Assembly: GCA_030704615.1 (NCBI GenBank)
Contig: CM060732.1
Coordinates: forward strand, 30,938,001 to 31,002,000
Direction of reading: 5' to 3'
DNA from: Takakia lepidozioides
Taxonomy: Eukaryota; Plantae; Bryophyta
Length of the DNA stretch: 64,000 nucleotides
The translations under genes and the position numbers were made by a program. Positions 1 to 41,784 of this stretch are shown one piece after another. A model generated the notes under the pieces. It was not told the origin of the DNA. It did no database searches and was given only the letters and a program-made list of their open reading frames with translations. Positions within the stretch are counted from its first letter, which is position 1, and each line of letters starts with the position of its first letter.

Positions 1-190
1 GCCGTCTCCGCTCACGACGATCATCCATCACCGACTCGACGAATGTCCAGAGCCGTCTCCGTCGACGACGATCATCCATCACCGTCGCGACGATTGTTCA
101 GATCCGTCTCCGTCGACGACGATCATCCATCACCGTCCCGACGAATGTTCAGAGCCGACTCCGTCCACGACGATCATCCGTCACCGTCCA
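1..190. repeat. 51-nt GC-rich tandem repeat, ~3.7 copies, probably continuing beyond the left edge
   Basis: The unit gccgtctccgtcgacgacgatcatccatcaccgtcgcgacgaatgttcaga recurs at 1, 52, 103 and 154. Confidence 0.9.
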
Positions 191-830
191 CGGTGACGGG
201 CTCCGTGACCCATCGCCGTGGAGGAAAGACTGTGCGTCCCTGCCCGTCCAAAATGTATTCCGTAGTTCGAACAGAGAGTGCGGTTATGGGGAGTGCCAAG
301 GAAGGGAGCGACAGGGACCCTCGTTTGGAGCGCGCACCCGCTCTTGCAAGCACCTCGTGCAGCGGGGCTGCACGCACGCGGACCACGACGGCTATGTCCT
401 TGTGCCATCTCTCTCACTCGCACCCCCCCATGGCGCCGTCTTCCGGCCTTCTCATGACCGCGCACGCCGACCCCATGCCCAAGCCCCTGCCCTCTCGCTT
501 CAGTCATGCGGGAAGCGTCGCGTCGTGCAGAGGCTGTGCTGTGGAGCTGAAAGCGGCATCCCCCTTGGCAATGCGCAGGGGACGAAATCCCCTGCATGTA
601 GTTGCTACGCCGCCTCGCCAACCTTCAGAGATGCCATTCAAATTAGGTGCTAACACGAAACTGTTTGCGCTTTCCCTTCTTGAGTTCGCTGTGTTGTGTG
701 CGTCGTAGGATCCAGGCTTGGAATTGTCTGTTGAGAAATTCAGCAGCAACAAATTTACTCTGGGCAAAGAAGCAAGAAAGCACAAGGGATGGTTAGACAA
801 GGTCGATAATTGGGTATATCTCGCACGTAG

Positions 831-3800
831 GTCAACGTGGAAGCATGGAACAGCGCTGGCAGGATTTCTATAAGGATCCTTCACAAAGTTCACAATGGTG
901 GGACAACTGCAATAGCAAGGTGTGGCTTTCTTGATATACCATGCGAAGAAGTTTGTCCGTTCTGCAAAAGTGGTCAGTATCATGATTTGTTCTTGTTCCT
1001 GGTGTTTACAAGGTACTCAGGAGGCAGCTTGGTCTTCTAAATCCATTCAGCTGCACTGTGGTGGTTCTCACAGACCAATCCAGGACGACCTGGCTACACA
1101 CACAAGCTATGCAAACAAGAGGTCCTTTGGGTTGATGGTCGGTTGAATCCTCCTTGGGTGAAGAAAGAGCCAGGTGATCTCTTGACACAAGGTCAAGGAC
1201 AATGTGGTGAGGGCACCGTGTTCTTCAACACACTCCGGCCTGTTTTTCTCATCAGCGTCGGTCGTAATTTTTCATGTTGAGTTGTGCAAGTTAGTTCGTT
1301 GGGTGGATCTATGGCGCTTTGGAGTGATTTTAACATGTTACTGCCAATGTGGCAACATGCAATTATCGGAAAGCAGAAAATAAAGACGAGGAGAAGCTTT
1401 GGAAGGAATATTTTTCAGACCCCAGTCAATGGTGGGACAATCGAGGCAAAAAGGTGAATGCCTGTAAAATACAGGGAACGGGCAACAGGATGCATCCCAA
1501 AACTTGGAAATTGTCATCCTCTCTCTCTCTTTCTCTCTCTCTCTCTGCCGGTAGTATGACTTACCTTGAAACAGATAATATATCCGAGTTTTCCAGATAT
1601 CCTCTAGAAATCCCTTCACACAAGCATCAATCTGCTGAGTGTGGTTTGCCCAATAACTAGGCCCCAAAAGGGCCTGGGCTTTTGGCTCAGCCTCGAGACT
1701 TTCAAAGTTGGTAAACATCAGCCCTGACAAAGGTAGTTTCTGTCCCTTTGTGTTCCTCTCAAACTGAGCACGGGGTCAATGGCCACAAGGCTACGGCAAA
1801 CAACGTCTTATGAGTGCATTCTCTCTTTCTTCCCAGGAAAATCAAGAACATTGTCTCGCACCTCTGTTGACCAACTTTCATAATCTTGAGGCCGAGCCTA
1901 ATGCCCTGGCCCTGTTGGGGTCTAACTTTTGGGCTGCTCACAGACAGAAGATTGATGCTTGTGTGAAGGGCTTTACTAGAGGATATCTGGAAAGCCCGAA
2001 CTAATTGTTTATATCAAGGTAAGTCACACTACCGGAGGGAGCCCCTCACAAAGGTAGTTTCTGGTCCCTTTTGTTCCGCCCAAACTGGAATTGGGGTCTA
2101 TGGCCACAAGGCTATGGCAAACAACGTCTTATGAGTACATTCTCTCTTCCCAGCACATTTTGAAATTCTTGGGAGTAATTCAGCATAGAAACTAGTCTGT
2201 GATAAGTAGTGATGGGTGTAACATTTTAGGTTGTCATTGTCAGCAGCAAGGGGAGGATCTATGCATTATTGGTGCTGAGGCAGGGATAGCTGAAGGAGCA
2301 GGGATGGACTGTTGGGTCCAGATTCATCTGAGAGGGCCAGACTTCAAGCACAAGATTACCTGTGAATCCCTGTGGATTGATAGCTACAAGAAACCTGCTT
2401 GGGTACACGGTCAACTGGAAGCAGCAGTGGCGGCACAGTTAATAAAATCAGTCACCTCCACCGTGGCCACAGTTTCCAAAAGAGGACCAAGAGAGGGAAT
2501 CTATAATACCTCTTCTGGCACTTCTGGGCATATGAGGAGGCTATGCGAGGCAGGGCAACTGAAAGCGGCTCTACAAATTTTAAACCAAGGAGGCATTTCA
2601 GTAGATTCAGATACTTACGTCTGTCTCTTGCATACGTGCATCAAGATGAAAAACCTGGAAGCCGGAAAGCAGGTGCACGCTCACATTGTTGAAAGCGGAT
2701 TAAAGCCAAACGTATTTCTACACAATACCCTCGTTAACATGTATGTTAAGTGTGGGAGTATTGTGGATGCACACAAAGTGTTCAACCAAATGCCTGAACG
2801 CGGTTTGATCCCGTGGAATATTATGATAGCAGGGTTTAACAAACATGGGTGTGGTACGAATGCCTTGGAGACATATGGGCAAATGATAGGGGAGGGTGTG
2901 AAGCCCAACCACATTACGTTCGTTTGCGTTTGCAATGCATGTGCGAGCCTGGCAGCCCTGGAAAAGGGCAAAGAGGTCCATGGTGACATCATCAAAGCGG
3001 GAATTGTACCCGATGTCATTCTGAACACTGCCCTGGTGGACATGTATGCCAAATGCGGCAGCATCGAGGATGCAAAAGAAGTGTTCGATGATATGGCTGA
3101 ACGAAATGTGGTATCCTGGAACGCTATGATCACAGGATATGCCCAACATGGGTGTGGGATGGAGGCTTTGGAGACCTATGAGCAAATGAAGCGGGAAGGG
3201 GTGAAGCCAGACCGGGTCACATTCATTTGCGTTAGCAATGCGTGCGCAAGCCTAGCAGCCCTGGAAAAGGGCAAAGAGGTCCATGGTGACATCATCAAAG
3301 TGGGAATCGTACCGGATGTCATTCTGAACACTGCCCTGATGAAAATGTATGCGAAATGTGGGCACATCGAGGATGCAAAGGCTGTGTTTGACAATATGGC
3401 CGAACGAGATGTGGTGTCCTGGAATGCAATGATCACAGGATATGCCCAGCAAGGGTGTGGGGTGGAGGCTTTGGAGATGTATGACCTAATGATGCGAGAA
3501 GGGGTGAAGCCCAACCGAGTTACGTTCGTTTGTGTTGGCAATGCGTGCGCTAGTCTGGCAGCCCTGGAAAAGGGCAAAGAGGTTCATAGTGACATCATCA
3601 AGGCGGGAATTGTACCAGATGTCATTCTGAACACTGCCCTGGTGGACATGTATGCCAAATGCGGCAGCATTGACGATGCAAAGGGAGTGTTTGACAATAT
3701 GGCTGAACGCAATGTTGTGTCCTGGAACGCGATGATAGCAGGATATGCCCAGCAGGGTTGCGGGATGGAGGCTCTGGAGACATATGAGCAAATGATGCGG

Positions 3801-4631
3801 GAAGGGGTGAAGCCGGACCAGGTCACGTTTGTTTGCATTAGCAATGCGTGCGCAAGCCTGGCGGCCCTGGAAATGGGCAAAGAGGTCCATGGTGACATCA
3901 TCAAAGCAGGAATTGTACCAAATGTCATTCTGAATACCGCCCTGGTGAACATGTATGCCAAGTGCGGTAGCATCCAAGATGCAAAGGGACTGTTTGACAA
4001 TATGGCTGAACGAGATGTGCTGTCATGGAGCGCGATGATCGCAGGATATGCCCAGCATGGTTGTCATAGAGAGGCCCTGCAACTATTTGAAGGAATGCAA
4101 AAGGAAGGCTTGAAGCCGAACAGTATCACCTTTATTTGTGTTCTCTCTGCATGCAGCCATGTTGGCCTACTGGATGAAGGAAGACGCTACTTTGATTCCC
4201 TGAGTCGAGATCACGGTGTCACTCCAACAGTAAAGCACTTTGGCTGCATGGTGGACCTTCTTGGACGTGCAGGGCGATTGGATGAGGCAGAGGACCTCAT
4301 TAATAAAATGCCAATCAAACCAGATGCTGTGGTGTGGAAGGCCTTGCTGGGTGCCTGCATAATCCATGGCAATGTGGAGATGGCTGAACGTGCGGCAACA
4401 TCTATTCTCAAGTCGGATGAACAGGATGTTGCGACTTATGTGTTGCTATCAAACATCTATGCGACAGCTGGCAGGTGGGACGATACTGCAAAAGTGAGAA
4501 GAATGATGAAGGCCAGAGGGATTAGAAAGGAGCCAGGTCGCTGCTGCATTGAGGTTGGCAACAGGGTGCACACCTTTGTTGTAGATGACAAATTGCATCC
4601 CAAAATTGAGGAAATCCATGCTGAGCTGTGA
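831..4631 (+). CDS. Spliced PLS-class PPR protein (organellar RNA-editing factor type) with two N-terminal OSB-type PDF motifs; ends as an E+ protein at TGA 4629-4631; true start lies upstream and is unresolved
   Basis: Phase-consistent GT-AG exons: ~831-919 (MEQRWQDFYKDPSQSSQWWDNCNSK), 1074-1206 (TNPGRPGYTHKLCKQEVLWVDGRLNPPWVK), 1377-1453 (KLWKEYFSDPSQWWDNRGKK) and 2322-4631 (IHLRGPDFKHKITCESLWIDSYKKPAWV, then 17 L/S/P motifs, E1, E2 and the PG box EPGRCCIEV). Confidence 0.88.
1545..2150. mobile_element. Truncated LINE family B 3' fragments in both orientations inside intron 1454-2321
   Basis: Matches the 3' end of the LINE at 26285-26700 (FTNFESLEAEPKAQALL..QIDACVKGFLEDIWK and ggccacaaggctacggcaaacaacgtcttatgagtacattctc). 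About 1547-1718 is minus; about 1719-1825 and 1845-2150 are plus. Confidence 0.85.
2930..4140 (+). repeat. Four 303-nt (101 aa) L-S-P triplet duplications inside the PPR array
   Basis: NACASLAALEKGKEVHGDIIKAGIVPDVILNTAL recurs with a 303-nt period (~2933, 3236, 3539, 3842). Confidence 0.9.
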
Positions 4632-4940
4632 AGATTGTCAGGGCAGATGAAGAAGGCAGGGTATGTGCCTGAGACACGCTTTGTATTGCATGATGTCGGG
4701 GAGGAGCAAAAGGAATTTTCTCTTTGCCACCACAGTGAGAAGCTGGCCATTGGTTTTGGGCTGATCAGCACAGCCCCTGGGACACCTCTCCGTGTCATCA
4801 AGAATCTTCGGGTGTGTGGTGACTGCCACACCGCCACCAAGTTCATCTCAAAGATAGTCAGCCGAGCAATTGTGGTACGGGACGCAAACCGCTTTCACCA
4901 CTTTGAAGATGGGGTTTGTTCGTGTGGGGATTACTGGTGA
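4632..4940 (+). pseudogene. Otherwise intact DYW cytidine-deaminase domain, in frame with the PPR ORF but separated from it by one TGA
   Basis: [19 protein letters not shown]...[13 protein letters not shown]...[10 protein letters not shown]...[16 protein letters not shown]; the HxE, CxxC and terminal DYW motifs are all present. Confidence 0.85.
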
Positions 4941-34079: not shown

Positions 34080-37000
34080 ATGTTGGGAGAGGCCATGCCC
34101 AAGGCGCTGTCTTCCCCTTGCGGAGGATGGGTGGGAGTTCTCAGATCATGCTGTAGGATAATGGTTCAAGCTGTGGGGCGGAAATGGGAGTCCACCTTTG
34201 CAGTGGCGGGCCCGAGACCCTTCCAAGTGAGGGTTGTCACACCTCCCCAGCGTCCAGAGGAACTGAAAAGAGGTATAGCATTTAACTATTTGCTTTATTT
34301 TCAGCGTTTTCAGTTGTGTTCGCGGCTCCAAATTCTGTACGAAGAAGTCCATGAGGTGAGGTTTGTCTGTTATTTCTATCCGGATACGCAGATGTGAGGA
34401 CAATAATTGATGTAAGGACTGGGGGTGATACCATGCTATAAACACAACACATCGCTTCCAGTAGTGCTCTGGTCTTCAATTTGACACATGTGGTGTGATT
34501 GGACTGCCAGTCACACCACTTGCTTGCGTGTCAGTGAGAGTGAAAGAGAGAAATTGAGTCCGCTGGGGCCCAAAAGACCCAAGGGACATAGGACAGAACC
34601 ATAGAAGTCTTTGGCACGCTGACAGAACAGAATCAGAGAGTGATGTAGGGGAAGCCTATACTAGCATTATCCAGTGCAAATCAATACGCCCAAAACAATT
34701 TTTGCAGCAGTCCATGTCAGATACTTTGCAGTGGTTGGACCACAGGTCTGATAAGGTGAGGCTGTTGACTGCTCTTTCTACCCAATTGTTGGTAAGGAAC
34801 GGCCCTTTACGGCGATGTATTTTTTGTTTTAAGTTTCTCTGATTAGTTACGTCTTCGTCACACCTGCTGAAGGGGTGAAATATATGTTATGCCACAATGG
34901 CATTGAAGTTGGTATTCTTAGAAAGTAGCATACTGCCGTTTGAAGCATTGCTCGTGCAGCTGTGTCGGTTGTATGCTGGTATATACAAGGCAGTATGATT
35001 TCTTAGCTGCAGATCCGCAGTGTTTACAGACGATTCCAAAATCAGCACACTTTAGCCATAAGCGGACAGAGATTGAGAACTCGTCAAATCCTCATAGGGT
35101 GATAGCAGACCTAGCTACCAGGACACAAAGTCATGCACAATGGAATGTTGGATGGATATCAGAGTACAGGTCTACCCCCGTTATGAAGGTTGGATCTCCC
35201 TCGTATTTTCAAGACTGGAGTCCAGATCATTGTGGGATTGTCCATTTTCATGGAATGACAGACTCTGGCGATATACATGCTGTGGAGGAATGTGAGTATC
35301 ATAGTCTGGCTTCCAGGGTGGGTTGGCCACCCGCTCCTCGGTATCTTCTGCAGCATCTGTCATGTCTGTGATGTTTGTAGATAATTGTGTGCATGAGCCA
35401 ACAGAGTGACATGCATAAATTGTTATCCAAAACCAATAGCAATGGTAGTTAGAGACTCTCACATAGCAGTTTTCATGATCTTGGAGTCCTTGAATGCAGT
35501 TAATACAGTGAGCGTAGAATCCCTCTGGCAGGAGTTCTTCTCAGATCCTTCACAGTGGTGGGACTACAGGTCCTTAAAGGTGAGGCTATCTTAACTGTAG
35601 CTTTTCAGGATGATGTTTTGTGGACTGTGATATTGTATCTCCACCCACGTAACTGATGAGATTTTTCTGTGCAAAGGTATCATAAGCGAAACTTCATGTA
35701 CATGTCAGCAGGTCTTCCCTTCTTGTTAGGAGGGGATGGAAGTAGGTTGTTCTAGGTTGTTTCCTGTTACTTGAGAATTGCTCGGAGCTCGGAGATTTGG
35801 CAGTCGTAGTATGGTCTGTGTGAGGTTGTGGTTGAAACTATGCCTGCTCAGCTGCAATTTTTATTTTATTTTCAGAAAAGTCCAGGATCACCAGACTTCA
35901 GAAATAAGCATACAAAGGAGATCCTTTGGATTGAGAGTTGGTCGACTCCTCCTTGGGTCAAAGCAAAACTCCGTGGCTGGACACAAGGTCAAGCACAATG
36001 CGATGGTGGACGGATAGCAGAGCATGGCTCCAATTCTGTTTTGAACACTGGAGCTCCATTTGTGTTTCAAGATGAGAATCCAGACTATGGTCGAAAAACA
36101 GACTCTGGTGAAACACGAGCTGTGCAGAAATGTGAGTATCACCCCCTATCAGTCAGGCCTGAAGGGTGGCCTTCGCCACCACAAGGTTCTTCAGTATTTT
36201 CTGCAACCTCTTTAATGTTTAGGTGTGTTTGTTTGCCGCTTGTGTGCATGAGGCAGAGAAAGAGCCCAAAGTAACTAGAGAATATCCAAAAGCGACAATT
36301 CGCCTCCTCAGTAGAAACAGGGGAATTGGCAGCTGGCGAAGTTCTCAAGGTTTTACATTTGTTGCACACAGGTCAATCAATGAGCATAAAACAGCTTTGG
36401 CAGGAGTTCTTCTTAGACCCTTCACTGTGGTGGGACAACAGGTTTGATAAGGTGAGGCTATCTTCCTTCAAGAACTAAAACGTTTGTCAAAGTTAGGGAC
36501 TGTCACTGGAATTAAGATGTTGGTTGACTTGACTAGTAATGATTTTCTCTTCCTCACGAGAAAGCAGCAAAAAGAAATGTTACTGATTCCTTGTCATCAT
36601 GTGCAGCGGGTTGTTTGAGTTTGTTCTTGGTACTGAAAGGATGCTTGAAACAGTTATAGCCTGCTCTATGGGAAGCTGTGATCACTACTCAGCTGCACTG
36701 ATGGTTTTCACAGAAAGGTCCAAGCTCACCAGACTTCAGGCATAAGCTCACAAAGGAAGTCCTGTGGATTGAGCATTGGTCAAACCCTCATTGGGTGAAA
36801 GCAGAGCTAGCTTCCATGATACGAGCACAATCTGATGATTGTTCTGATGTCGATGGACACGATGGAATTCTAGACAAAGATTATAGCGGGTATTCTCTTG
36901 ATAATATTGGAGTACTGGTACATTATTTGTATAGTAGATGACTGCCTATAACCCTATTGATATATATAGTTAGAGCCGGTCCTCCTGAGGAAACTTTTAT

Positions 37001-38674
37001 GTGAAGTATTATTCCAAGTAAATGACTGCAGTGGTTCCCTAACCTTGGTTATGCAAGAAACTGCTCGGCATGAGATGTTTATTTTAAGTATCGAAGAGCT
37101 TTGTGATATTAAGGTGAGAGGTTGAGTGTTAAGGGGTTGTAACTAAAGTTTGGATGAAGAGTTTTTGCTTTGAATCAGATATCAGATGTTATGTCAATAT
37201 GTTCTCACCCTTATCAGGTGTTTGATCATGCAGAATGGCAGGGTTGAATCATGCACATACATGCAGCAGAGGAAGCACTACAATCACCGAAAAAGCACCA
37301 AGAGCGGGAAACCCATCTGACACTTTTTGGGATGTGAGGCCACCATACAAGGCAGGCCGGCTCAAAGTGGCTCTGCATATTTTGAACCAGCGAGGCATTC
37401 AAGCAGACTCCAACACTTACGCCAGTGTGTTGCAAGAGTGCATCAACATGAAAGACCTAGCAGAAGGGAAACAGGTGCATGCCCACATCATCCAAAGTGG
37501 ATTCAATGCAAACACTTTTCTACTCAACACTGTTGTAAACATGTATGCCAAGTGCGGGAGTGTAGGGGATGCACGCCAAGTGTTTGACAAAATGCCTGAA
37601 CGAGATATGATGACCTGGAATATAATGATAGCAGGATATGCCAAGCATGGGTATGGTAGGGAGGCTTTCAAGATCTACGAGCAAATGCAATGGGAAGGGA
37701 TAAAACCGAACAGGGTGACTTTCGTTTGCATTCTCAATGCTTGTGCCAGCCTAGGGGCCCTGGGAAAGGGCAAAGAGGTCCATGCTGACATCATGAAAGC
37801 TGGAATTGAGTCACATACTCATTTGGAAAATACCCTTGTTAACATGTATGCGAAATGTGGGGACTTTAGGGGTGCATGCCGTGTATTTGACAATATGGCT
37901 CAACGAGATGTGGTCTCATGGACTGCAATGATTGCAGGATATGCTCAACATGGTTGTGGTAGGGAGGCTTTTGAGATATATAAGCAAATGCAATGGGAAG
38001 GTGTGGCGTCAAACAAGGTCACATTCGCCTGCATTCTCAATGCGTGTGCCAGCCTAGGAGCTCTAGAGAAGGGCAAAGAGATCCATGCTGACATCATCAA
38101 AGCTGGAATTCCGTTAGATAGGAATTTGGAGACTACCCTTACTGACATGTATGCCAAATGTGGAAGCATGAAGGATGCACATCAAGTGTTTGACAACATG
38201 GCTAAACGCGATGTGGTCACATGGAGTGCCATGATCTCTGGATATGCCCAGCATGGGTGTAGTAGGGAGGTACTGCAACTGTTCGAACAGATGTGGCAGG
38301 AGGGTCTGAAGCCAGACAGTATCATCTTTCTATCTGTTCTCTCTGCATGTAGTCATGCAGGCCTAGTGGATGAAGGTCATCACTATTTTGCTTCTATGAG
38401 TCGACATCATGGCCTCAAACCAACAAAGGAGCATTTTGCCTGTGTGGTGGACCTTCTCAGCCGTGCAGGGCGATTGGATGAGGCAGAGGACTTAATTATC
38501 AATATGCCGATCAAACCAGATGCTTCAGTATGGGGTGCCTTGCTTGGGGCCTGCAGAATTCATGGTGGTGTGGAGGTGGCAGAACGGGCAGCGAATTACC
38601 TTCTCAAGTGTGATCTGCAGTGCGCTGTACCTTGTGTACTTCCATTGAACATCTATGTTCCGACTAGCAGGTAG
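34080..38674 (+). CDS. Spliced PLS-class PPR protein: putative transit peptide, three PDF motifs (first degenerate), 11 PPR motifs, E1 and truncated E2
   Basis: In-frame exons 34080-34355, 34675-34755 (QWLDHRSDK), 35030-35291 (TIPKSAHFSHKRT), 35500-35579 (SLWQEFFSDPSQWWDYRSLK), 35876-36131 (KSPGSPDFRNKHTKEILWIESWSTPPWV), 36372-36451 (QLWQEFFLDPSLWWDNRFDK), 36714-36889 (KGPSSPDFRHKLTKEVLWIEHWSNPHWV) and 37234-38674 (PPR array). Confidence 0.87.
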
Positions 38675-38800
38675 GACGAAGGATTTCCTCTTTGTCATCT
38701 GATTGAGAAGCTGGCGCTTGCATTTGGGCTCACTGGCTAAATCCACACATTGAGGAAGGTCAGAGATTGTCTGGGAAGTCATTGACGCTTCCATTCGATC
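38675..38800 (+). pseudogene. Decayed DYW remnant
   Basis: After SR* (the GRW position) the frame continues DEGFPLCHLIEKLALAFGLTG*, equivalent to [19 protein letters not shown]; the PG box is deleted. Confidence 0.75.
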
Positions 38801-39424
38801 TCACAAAAGCTACATAGGAAAGAAACACTCCAACAGTGGAAAAGTTCTCTATTCGCTAGTTGTTCACGGATTCCTTGCCTGTCTGTATCATAACAAGGCT
38901 AGGGTGTATTGTAATGTTGCATTGAATGTAATTAGAGTTATTAACAGATTGCAGTTGCCATCTCCATCTCCACAACAACACTCCATGAAACACATTTCAG
39001 AGCCCTCTTAGGGCATCCATTAGCCCGGAACTCGAACAGTTTAATTCCAGGTCCACGACCGGTCATACGCATGTTGAAAACTGTTCTATTTTATGGATTG
39101 GGGTGGCAGGTAGCATTCATATGGGTGAAACTCAGTGGATGTATTGTACAACCGCTATAGATAGACACGTTGAGCATCACCAACATCATCACCAACATCA
39201 TTGAACGATGGCTGTAAATCTGTCTGCCATCTGAGCACAAGATGGCTGTTTACAGCTTCATTTAAATCTTGGTTTCTGTAATGTGCTGGAGTATACAAGT
39301 ATAGGTCACCAATGCTTTTGGGAGTCTGATAGGAAGCATACACTCTACTAAATGTGGGAGGACTTAATAAGAAACAGCTCCAGTTACTTCATTTCTGAGG
39401 TACAGCCTGTGGCATGCTTTGGAC

Positions 39425-40359: not shown

Positions 40360-41784
40360 TTAACGGTAGAGCTGAACGCGAGGCAGGTGAATGCCAGAAG
40401 CCTTGAGAAAATGTGGGATGGCGGACTTGGAGGTTTTGAGCAGATCATTATAAAACATGAACTCGCCCTCAACATCGTAACTGAGCTGGGATGCATTTAA
40501 CAAGTCTTGCTTAATCTTCCCAGGGTTTTTTGACCAGACATCATAAGTTTGCAATTCTTGAGTTGCCATTCCACTGAAGCCAAAGAGATCCACCCTGTTA
40601 CAGATGCTCAAGGCGAGGACCACTGCTTGCATGCCAATGGAGTGGGTAACAGACGTACGGTTCCAACTGTTGGCTGCTAATTTTGTGGTTGCAATGAAGT
40701 GCTTGAGAGAGTACCATCGTGCAAGTCTGGTGCACATCTTGTCGAATAGAACGTCCGTGATTATGACAGGGTATTGGTTTGCGAAGTTGCAGACAGCAAC
40801 ATCCATGTAATACTCGGGAGTCAAGACCGAAGCCACAATCGGCACTCGCGTCATGTAAGGTTGGCAACTGCATGTGAAACCCCTGCTTGCGCAATCATGT
40901 AGAAAATATTCATGTAAAAACAGCAAGCTACACTTCTGCCCCACAAACTTCTCGAAGCCTCGTGTTTCAGCGTAGTTCAGTCGTACTACCATCTCATGCG
41001 AATCAATGTAGCGACCGTAGGATTTATTGAACAGAATCCCACTGTTGCCAACCACAGCACATGAATTGTAAGGCCGGTTAGAATCAACACTTTGTTGCAG
41101 AGTCTTGGATGCATACTCGTCGATGCGTTTCTTCACACTTTTCAAGAGGTCTCGCACTGTGAAGGAGTGAAACCAATCGAACTGCTCATTGTTCGCCGTT
41201 GTCAACAGTCGGTGGAACTTGGTCCAGTAAGGGATATATCTCATATCGTCCAGAGGTCGTGGCAAGGCAGACAGCTTAGCCTTCTCTTCGTTGCAAGCTT
41301 TCACTCTGTTTGGAGCAGCTCCACGGCCACGGAACTGTATATGTTGTGCCGCCTCGCATATATCTGGCAGCTCGCTAGGCCTCGAACTTGCATCAAGAAG
41401 TCTCTTTACTTTTGCCTGTTCAAATGGAATTTTTGGAGAAACTGACAATGACGACAGCTGCCCGTGAAAGCTGCTACCACGAGGATGAGGATGACTACCC
41501 GGATTCCACCATAGCTGCAAGGGTCTAGGGAAATCTATTGCCAGGATTTGTTCTCCTTGCATGTAACAGGTTGCGGCATATACCGTGGCTGCGATTAAGA
41601 GTAGGCTGACAATTACAGCTATCGGCGAGCCAGGATGCAATTTCCAATGGTTAGAGGCGCTCCAGAAGCAACGTGAGTCAATAGATTTCTTCTTCCTCAT
41701 ACTACGACCGCAAAAGCAACGCCTTGTGGATCTCGGAGGTGATTTCTTTGCCGTCCCCGGCACGCTTGGCTGCTCCTTTCCCAT
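40360..41784 (-). CDS. GT29 sialyltransferase-like type II membrane glycosyltransferase (GALT29A-like)
   Basis: Uninterrupted 474-aa ORF with an N-terminal TM ([17 protein letters not shown]), sialylmotif [30 protein letters not shown] and motif [23 protein letters not shown]. Confidence 0.92.

Follow-up and report, generated by a model that had tools for sequence, protein, structure and literature searches.

Among the programmable RNA editors of plants, PPR-DYW proteins are the best understood, and they are being engineered as tools. Accounts of them give a targeting peptide, a PPR array and an E/DYW part and no further component, and we know of no described PPR-DYW editing factor with a recognised domain ahead of the array. 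A locus at positions 831-4940 of the 64-kb stretch of DNA analysed here (the window) raises the question of whether some of these proteins carry more than that, as a first-pass annotation had read it as a fusion of PDF motifs with a PLS-PPR-DYW editing factor. The PDF motif is that of OSB1-OSB4, organellar proteins that bind single-stranded DNA (ssDNA) and were reportedly described by Zaegel et al. in 2006. The four proteins have since been reviewed (PMC6963530, PMC4166229, PMC13393729). Below, gene A denotes the focal PDF-PDF-PPR-E-DYW gene and gene B a second copy at 35.5-38.9 kb in the same window; all features lie on the plus strand.

The PPR array and DYW domain of gene A

Gene A belongs to the nuclear-encoded PLS-class PPR-E-DYW family of organellar RNA-editing factors. 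The open reading frame of its exon 4 (2322..4628) encodes a linker, a PLS-type PPR array, E1/E2 motifs and the start of E+. The array matched the Pfam models PPR_2 (6e-101) and PPR (1.3e-86) in 11-13 stretches, followed by E_motif (8.9e-21) and Eplus (2.8e-4), the last over profile positions 1-21 only because an in-frame TGA cuts E+. Within the array, an L-S-P repeat triplet of 303 bp is present in four tandem copies that are 85% alike (2844..4064). The remainder of E+ and a complete DYW deaminase follow at 4632..4940, in the frame of the upstream PPR reading frame, with HSEKLA, CGDCH, a CSCGDYW end and a stop codon at 4938-4940; the zinc motifs HxE and CxxCH and the terminal DYW are all present, and the match to DYW_deaminase (4e-45) spans profile positions 1-93 of 93. 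The nearest relatives of the exon 4 reading frame are Diphasiastrum PPR proteins, at 53-57% identity. The moss proteins PPR56, PPR65 and PPR78 (DYW:PG type) resemble gene A in having a PLS array, E1/E2/E+ motifs and a DYW deaminase with HxE and CxxCH, encoded essentially by a single large exon. Unlike such factors, members of the gene A family carry one to three additional PDF units encoded by small 5' exons, and in gene A itself a TGA intervenes before the DYW domain.

Exon structure of the PDF units

The two PDF units of gene A are encoded by exons at 845-919, 1074-1206 and 1377-1453, and by the beginning of the large exon, from 2322 onward. Exon 1 (845..919) holds the first half of unit 1; it has an ATG at 845, reads ..WQDFYKDPSQSSQWWDNCNSK|GT and ends ..WWDNCNSK|GT in phase 0. 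It is also matched by Diphasiastrum PDF units in tblastn searches. A possible acceptor at 830|831 would permit a further exon upstream; in positions 1-830, a tblastn search that took Diphasiastrum PDF-PPR N-termini as queries found no presequence exon. Exon 2 (1074..1206) supplies the second half of unit 1 (1074-1163, reading CAG|TNPGRPGYTHKLCKQEVLWVDGRLNPPWV), in which PGYTHK replaces PDFKHK, and a linker. Its preferred donor is G|GTGAGG at 1206|1207, with an alternative at 1173|1174, both in phase 1; DNA similarity between genes A and B extends to 1204, and a contig from run X1 breaks at 1207. The first-pass annotation had mentioned a second, diverged PDF copy ahead of the PPR array, and exons 1 and 2 (845-919 and 1074-1163) encode it.

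Exon 3 (1377..1453) carries the first half of unit 2 (..EKLWKEYFSDPSQWWDNRGKK), which stops at 1453 as ..LWKEYFSDPSQWWDNRGKK|GTGAAT in phase 0; its acceptor at 1376|1377 is a prediction only. Intron 3 (1454..2321) is repeat-filled, with very high contig depth, a SINE-like unit present twice (about 1733-1830 and 2043-2150), inverted transposon-like pieces and an alternative in-frame acceptor at 2279|2280. The second half of unit 2 (IHLRGPDFKHKITCESLWIDSYKKPAWV), preceded by CAG, opens exon 4 (2322..2408), and the acceptor at 2322 leaves 8 residues between WWDNR and PDF, matching the OSB consensus. As the junctions at 1453 and 2322 are both phase 0, the two halves are predicted to join in frame with each other and with the PLS-PPR-E-DYW exon, as had been proposed from peptides that we found in the window where they were quoted. 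All splice sites and phases of gene A were intact on inspection. Sequencing runs X1 and X2, which may be of DNA or RNA, match gene A, where thousands of paralogue contigs swamp the signal. Breaks in X1 contigs coincide with the exon ends predicted at 1206/7 and 1453/4, and one X1 contig has a GT..AG joint from 1453 to 2280, an acceptor that differs from 2322 and may come from a paralogue.

Homology to the OSB PDF motif

We built an HMM from 180 PDF units, taken from 80 OSB-type proteins that have no PPR array, and searched it against the 3062 stop-to-stop pieces from all six frames of the window. This OSB-only HMM matched eight pieces (E 1e-3 to 1e-9), four half-exons of gene A and four of gene B, with the next-best piece at E 0.05; a chance match of the motif was rejected on this selectivity. 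The gene A matches were at 842-919 (E 1.4e-3, HMM positions 3-25), 1071-1163 (E 3.7e-4, positions 25-53), 1382-1459 (E 1.5e-9, positions 2-27) and 2331-2408 (E 1.1e-8, positions 29-53). Over all eight half-exons, first halves align to HMM positions 2-27 and second halves to 25-53.

The reverse search, with a profile of 31 PPR-linked PDF units against 1.84 billion proteins, returned 1134 clusters, including proteins named OSB3 (2.7e-30) and OSB1 (1.4e-26). Among the best 150 of these 1134 matches, 140 were non-PPR proteins with a median length of 356 aa and C-terminal PDFs; a fern match (P0338) carries the Pfam SSB domain. Homology to the OSB proteins was recovered in both directions, at E 1e-26 to 1e-30 one way and about 1e-9 the other. 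OSB proteins and gene A have in common a tandem PDF of ~50 residues with the signature LW..F..P..WWDNR..K..PDFKHK..E.LW....P.WV, which PPR-linked units retain in full, including the conserved basic residues R22, K25, K34, H35 and K36. At the level of sequence, these comparisons confirm the N-terminal motifs of gene A as true homologues of the OSB PDF motif.

Gene A is nevertheless not an OSB gene. OSB proteins have a transit peptide, a central SSB-like OB fold and C-terminal PDFs, whereas no exon of gene A gave a Pfam match to the SSB (OB-fold) domain, its PDFs stand N-terminal to a PPR array, and its units are split by introns that poplar OSB1 does not have. A Pfam scan of the short exons gave no match because Pfam has no PDF model, and neither did a word-indexed search, for which the half-motif that opens exon 4 is too short a query. 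Searches took single exons of the gene or public proteins as queries. An AlphaFold model of one PDF unit was of moderate confidence (pLDDT 75) and resembled no solved fold (Foldseek best E 9; VIA-align best Z 2.3), so structure offers no mechanistic support.

PDF-PPR fusions in seed-free plants

The first-pass annotation had suggested counting PDF and PPR co-occurrence across plants. PDF units are carried by 32 of the 120 best PPR relatives, and at least 71 Diphasiastrum protein clusters have the fusion, which we also found in Sphagnum species, in the fern Adiantum and in the liverwort Calypogeia. The annotation's mention of similar N-termini in ferns was right as far as Adiantum goes, but the best relatives are lycophyte and not fern. 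The layout is one to three N-terminal PDF units and then a PLS-PPR array, to which gene A conforms, and a Sphagnum PDF-PPR model begins with an exon that resembles a presequence (MALQRLTPALARPLVVLSG), followed by the PDF. Elsewhere in seed-free plants the fusions are annotated or assembled as uninterrupted transcript-like contigs, among them a 4755-nt contig from SRR4210093 that encodes three PDFs and a PPR array. A gene-prediction artefact was rejected, given an exon structure common to three genomes and this uninterrupted contig.

A phase-0 intron follows the conserved Lys (AAG|GT) in all eight PDF units examined (two each from genes A and B, one from Sphagnum fallax locus L003 and three from Diphasiastrum locus L004), whereas both PDFs of poplar OSB1 lie within one exon, with no PDF intron. 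In a tree of PDF units, 49 of the 54 PPR-linked units fell in one clade (SH-aLRT 88), and 6 changes between PPR-linked and other labels were observed, against 34-44 with shuffled labels. The intron position common to Sphagnum, Diphasiastrum and the window, and absent in poplar OSB1, points to one old fusion; combined with the near-single clade, it suggests that the PDF module was captured once, early in land-plant evolution, and it appears to have multiplied with the PPR family thereafter. A literature search found no publication describing a PDF-PPR fusion, in keeping with the earlier remark that such N-termini had no functional description. The combination of PDF with PPR-DYW is real and ancient, and apparently undescribed.

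An in-frame stop and a dead neighbour

In the assembled sequence, the single reading frame from the PPR array to the DYW domain is broken by the TGA at 4629..4631, between E+ and an otherwise intact DYW domain, a codon already implied when the first-pass annotation spoke of a TGA-repaired clone. Glu occupies this position in 18 of 26 homologues, and paralogue contigs from X1 and X2 have A at 4629, giving AGA, a one-base difference from gene A. PDF unit 1 is also decayed, with scores of 16-18 bits for its half-exons, compared with 31-35 bits for the remaining six in genes A and B. The claim that gene A joins PDF to a PPR array and a deaminase stands for the architecture and is weakened for the gene as assembled, where the TGA cuts off the DYW domain and one PDF unit has decayed.

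Gene B (35511..38900) is clearly a dead paralogue neighbouring gene A. It has PDF half-exons at 35511-35579, 35876-35962, 36386-36451 and 36714-36800 and a PPR reading frame at 37235-38674; its E2/E+ is deleted, and a DYW remnant with stops remains at about 38654-38900. Genes A and B can be aligned at the DNA level in their exons only, which we count as a sign of constraint. With the TGA separating E+ from the DYW domain, the most likely status of gene A is that of a recently arisen pseudogene, or of a truncated allele, in a gene cluster that evolves by birth and death.

Two other readings of the locus seem unlikely. The TGA might be an assembly error, a heterozygous allele or tolerated, in which case gene A would be a working PDF-PDF-PPR-DYW editor, or a PPR-E+ protein with DYW supplied in trans. 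Coding sequence of about 3.4 kb contains this defect alone, the downstream DYW frame stays open for 101 codons and keeps every catalytic motif, and one base at 4629 separates the paralogue contigs from gene A; yet the window sequence has a clear T at 4629, dead copies such as gene B are frequent in the cluster, and to our knowledge E+ proteins that rely on DYW in trans are known from seed plants and not from seed-free plants. It is similarly improbable that the PDF exons are relics outside the transcript, with a gene that starts within exon 4 or a silent locus. The decay of PDF unit 1, the lack of a presequence exon in 1-830, the nonsense codon, the dead neighbour and the repeat-swollen intron 3 would fit such relics. 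Against this, PDF unit 2 scores like genuine OSB units, splice sites and phases are intact, and breaks in X1 contigs fall exactly at predicted exon ends.

What PDF units may do in editing factors

We assign a probability of roughly 0.6 to the account as a whole: an OSB-type PDF module that was captured one time, gene A as a probable pseudogene, and an RNA clamp in the intact members of the family. PPR proteins bind RNA in parallel orientation, with the N-terminus toward the RNA 5' end. For that reason the N-terminal PDF units of intact, organelle-imported members would hold single-stranded nucleic acid, without sequence specificity, immediately 5' of the RNA that the PPR array reads. Such a grip would strengthen binding and hold the target in an unfolded state for the C-terminal deaminase, making PDF a built-in helper in lineages that do not have the MORF helper proteins of seed plants.

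The MORF/RIP and ORRM proteins of seed plants possibly have the same role by analogy, as non-specific accessories that improve RNA binding by PLS-PPR proteins, although their fold is unrelated and they act mostly in trans, whereas PDF forms part of the editor itself, in cis. MORF occurs exclusively in seed plants (PMC13386178), whereas the PDF-PPR fusions that we encountered among the 150 best of 1134 matches are all from seed-free plants. PPR-RRM, PPR-MORF and PPR-RanBP2 Znf proteins likewise have an accessory nucleic-acid- or protein-binding domain fused to PPR motifs; the fusion catalogue that describes them does not list PDF (PMC13386178). Domain-based surveys cannot see PDF because it has no Pfam model.

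For the OSB proteins, the PDF of OSB1 is enough to bind ssDNA, and OSB1/2 show a preference for ssDNA over dsDNA or RNA (PMC6963530, PMC4166229). This preference suits a tether to DNA at least as well as a clamp on RNA. The PDF units might accordingly bind single-stranded organellar DNA and hold the editor at transcribing or replicating nucleoids or at R-loops, making editing co-transcriptional, which is close to what the first-pass annotation had in mind. The sole available biochemistry, which concerns OSBs, and the retention of the entire OSB signature in PPR-linked units speak for this. We still consider it rather improbable, as one to three 50-residue units outside the OB-fold and tetramer context of OSB proteins may bind weakly, and PDF-less editing factors, such as the moss proteins PPR56, PPR65 and PPR78, reportedly function in these same lineages as well as in E. 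coli assays. A role as a protein-protein or oligomerisation module, recruiting for example OSB, nucleoid or editosome partners or regulating the PPR array, is less probable again: OSB2 forms a tetramer (PMC6963530) and PDF is a small motif with many Trp and Pro residues and without a known nucleic-acid-binding fold, but the conserved basic residues suit contact with nucleic acid.

Returning to the clamp, it is conceivable, though we hold it only tentatively, that in liverworts, mosses, lycophytes and ferns a large proportion of editing factors rely on PDF as a built-in, sequence-nonspecific single-strand clamp in place of MORF, either on RNA 5' of the PPR footprint or on the displaced DNA strand at a transcription bubble, which would couple editing to transcription.

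Implications

The first-pass observation is confirmed and its interpretation partly supported. Gene A alone adds little, as it is probably a pseudogene, and its interest lies in illustrating the birth-and-death dynamics of its cluster and the conserved exon structure. In the family, a conserved putative nucleic-acid-binding module precedes the PPR array in dozens of genes per genome and in four major seed-free lineages, missed by annotation and by domain surveys because it has no Pfam model and an intron interrupts it. The known range of the PDF motif now extends beyond the OSB proteins, raising the question of how editing factors gain affinity for, or access to, their targets in plants that do not have MORF. 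If PDF does act as a clamp, a third component of the editing machinery of seed-free plants would have gone unrecognised, and designer PPR editors could be improved by an addition of 50 residues.

Structure of the PDF-PDF-PPR-E-DYW gene

The coding part of the gene at 845-4940 (+), here called gene A, ends in two frames of the same phase parted by a TGA at 4629-4631. In the first, a 2.4-kb open reading frame (2199-4631, +) that ends in this TGA, Pfam recognises PPR repeats (PPR_2, 6e-101) together with an E motif (9e-21) and the beginning of E+; in the second, of 306 bp (4635-4940, +), it recognises a full DYW deaminase (4e-45, match over all 93 profile positions) that retains HSEKLA, CGDCH and the terminal DYW. 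The first-pass annotation had proposed OSB-type PDF motifs fused to this editing factor, and the peptides it quoted are indeed present, in three short open stretches upstream of the PPR frame. The exon model comprises exon 1 (845-919, +), with its ATG at 845 and preceded, at 829-830, by an AG that is a possible acceptor for an additional upstream exon; exon 2 (1074-1206, +), with the donor G/GTGAGG or another at 1173/1174, phase 1 with either; exon 3 (1377-1453, +), a short open stretch; and exon 4 (from 2322, +), with another in-frame acceptor at 2279/2280. Exons 1 and 2 together reconstitute one PDF unit and exons 3 and 4 another, both cut at the identical site, AAG/GT, in phase 0 immediately 3' of a lysine codon. 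Use of acceptor 2280 would place 14 extra residues in the WWDNR-PDF loop, where insertions are also known for group III OSBs (PMC13393729). No presequence exon was found for gene A, whereas one precedes the PDF in a Sphagnum PDF-PPR model.

Upstream of the gene, window 1-189 contains a tandem repeat of 51 bp (3.7 copies, 90% alike) within a GC-rich (0.63) stretch (window 1-500); these could be the promoter or 5' region of gene A, or unrelated. Intron 3 (1454-2321) is crowded with dispersed repeats, including two copies of a SINE-like unit of ~100 bp (about 1733-1830 and 2043-2150), and a piece of a transposon-like ORF is present in inverted copies in its region (1338-1730, -; 1810-2004, +). 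Both public runs show very high contig depth over this intron.

Homology of the PDF units to OSB proteins

Pfam has no model for the PDF motif, and a gene A half-motif alone, too short a piece, had no match in a word-indexed search. The comparisons below used single exons or public proteins. The best matches of the exon 4 protein were PPR proteins of the lycophyte Diphasiastrum complanatum (53-57% identity), and 32 of its 120 best PPR matches carry one to three complete, contiguous N-terminal PDF units. A profile from 31 aligned PPR-linked units, searched against 1.84 billion representative proteins, retrieved 1134 clusters at E <= 0.001. Among the best 150 of these, 140 were non-PPR proteins (median length 356 residues), 130 of them with the final PDF no more than 80 residues from the C-terminus. 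The matches include proteins named "Protein OSB3, chloroplastic/mitochondrial" (2.7e-30) and "protein OSB1, mitochondrial-like" from Populus (1.4e-26), and one Ceratopteris match carries Pfam SSB.

In the reverse direction, of the 3062 stop-to-stop pieces in the window, exactly eight were matched by an HMM built only from OSB-type proteins (180 PDF units of 80 proteins): the four half-exons of gene A (E 1.4e-3, 3.7e-4, 1.5e-9 and 1.1e-8) and four of a paralogue, gene B; the next best piece scored 0.05. First halves covered HMM positions 2-27 and second halves 25-53. Because the PPR-linked profile retrieves OSBs and the OSB-only HMM retrieves only PDF half-exons, the homology that the annotation had proposed is established. 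Unit 2 of gene A matches as well as a genuine OSB unit, and the second, diverged copy noticed earlier is unit 1, which is decayed (PGYTHK instead of PDFKHK, WWDNC, two inserted residues).

Two angiosperm models, from Kingdonia uniflora (1160 aa, 13 PDF stretches and a weak SSB match) and Coptis chinensis (1526 aa, a kinesin model with three PDF stretches), could reflect genuine expansions or fusions, or else merged gene models.

State of the two copies

At the TGA site of gene A, 18 of 26 homologues have Glu, and paralogue contigs of two public runs have A at 4629, giving AGA. All sequence 3' of the TGA is intact, which points to a young mutation, or else to an error or an allele. Gene A is probably a dead member of the PDF-PPR family. 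Its PPR array contains four tandem 303-bp copies of an L-S-P triplet (2844-4064, +; 85% alike), which differ mainly at the Asn/Asp specificity (code) positions, suggesting that the array was internally duplicated not long ago and that its predicted target is of low complexity and rich in pyrimidines.

The public runs containing gene A sequence are of unspecified type and paralogue-dominated. In these runs contig breaks at 1206/7 and 1453/4 match predicted exon ends, as do the ends of a GT..AG joint (1453 to 2280) within a contig, and the near-exact contigs displayed map to exon 4 and to the 3' flank. The coincidence of breaks and joint with the exon model falls short of proof of transcription or splicing of gene A.

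Gene B (35511-38900, +) shares this layout, with two PDF units, each split, ahead of a PPR exon; as DNA, it is alignable with gene A in exons only. Its PDF half-exons are well kept (E 1e-7 to 1e-9, OSB-only HMM); E2/E+ is deleted and the C-terminus is a DYW remnant (..LCHLIEKLALAFGL..) with several stops. Gene B is dead. Nearby, an intronless 474-residue ORF (40360-41784, -) encodes a glycosyltransferase family 29 (sialyltransferase-like) domain (Pfam 8.9e-28); an identical protein was absent from the public collection.

Distribution and origin of the PDF-PPR family

Diphasiastrum has at least 71 PDF-PPR clusters at 90% identity, and the fusion was also found in several Sphagnum species, the fern Adiantum capillus-veneris, the liverwort Calypogeia fissa and Logan contigs. 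One of these contigs (SRR4210093, 4755 nt) carries three PDFs and a PPR array uninterrupted, as a spliced mRNA would look. Two Sphagnum models (P0004, P0087) start at residue 2-5 with the second PDF half only (HMM positions 24-54); here the intron conceals the first-half exon, which annotation missed.

All eight PPR-linked units examined as DNA (two each in genes A and B, one in Sphagnum fallax and three in Diphasiastrum) had the phase-0 intron 3' of the Lys codon, whereas Populus nigra OSB1 (locus L002, 3162-3650) lacks it and has both its PDF units in one terminal exon. Of the 54 PPR-linked units in a tree that also included 90 OSB-type units, 49 fell in one clade (SH-aLRT 88) together with two short fragments, and the PPR-linked versus OSB-type labels needed 6 changes, against 34-44 when shuffled. 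The alignment has only ~55 columns, so the tree lends support without being decisive. Published reports place PDF-bearing OSBs in lineages from streptophyte algae onward (PMC4166229, PMC13393729). Most likely, a PLS-PPR gene captured a PDF exon pair once, before the moss/liverwort/vascular plant split, after which units would have duplicated and the family expanded.

PDF-PPR proteins are present, unnamed, in public proteomes. PPR goes unmentioned in every paper found to discuss or name the PDF motif or domain, a 2026 survey of 182 OSB genes among them, and a kingdom-wide 2026 survey of domain fusions among editing factors does not include PDF (PMC13386178). A search for the PDF sequence signature found nothing in a literature of which many subscription papers lay outside its reach. 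In line with the first-pass annotation, the literature searched yielded no prior description of the architecture, functional or otherwise.

Possible function

PPR arrays bind RNA with the N-terminus toward the 5' end, so N-terminal PDFs would sit just upstream of the PPR-recognised sequence, where they might add non-specific single-strand affinity and hold the site unfolded. The OSB1 PDF is sufficient for ssDNA binding (PMC6963530, PMC4166229). The tethering to nucleoids or R-loops suggested in the first-pass annotation agrees equally well with the published preference of OSB1/2 for ssDNA over dsDNA or RNA (PMC6963530, PMC4166229). A protein-interaction module is also possible. An AlphaFold model of one PDF unit (pLDDT 75) has a helix at residues 2-13 followed by short strands and matched no solved structure in a structure comparison, so structure favours none of the three. 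Every PDF-PPR fusion encountered among the proteins and contigs examined comes from a seed-free plant, in contrast to the MORF helpers, which are found in seed plants only (PMC13386178).
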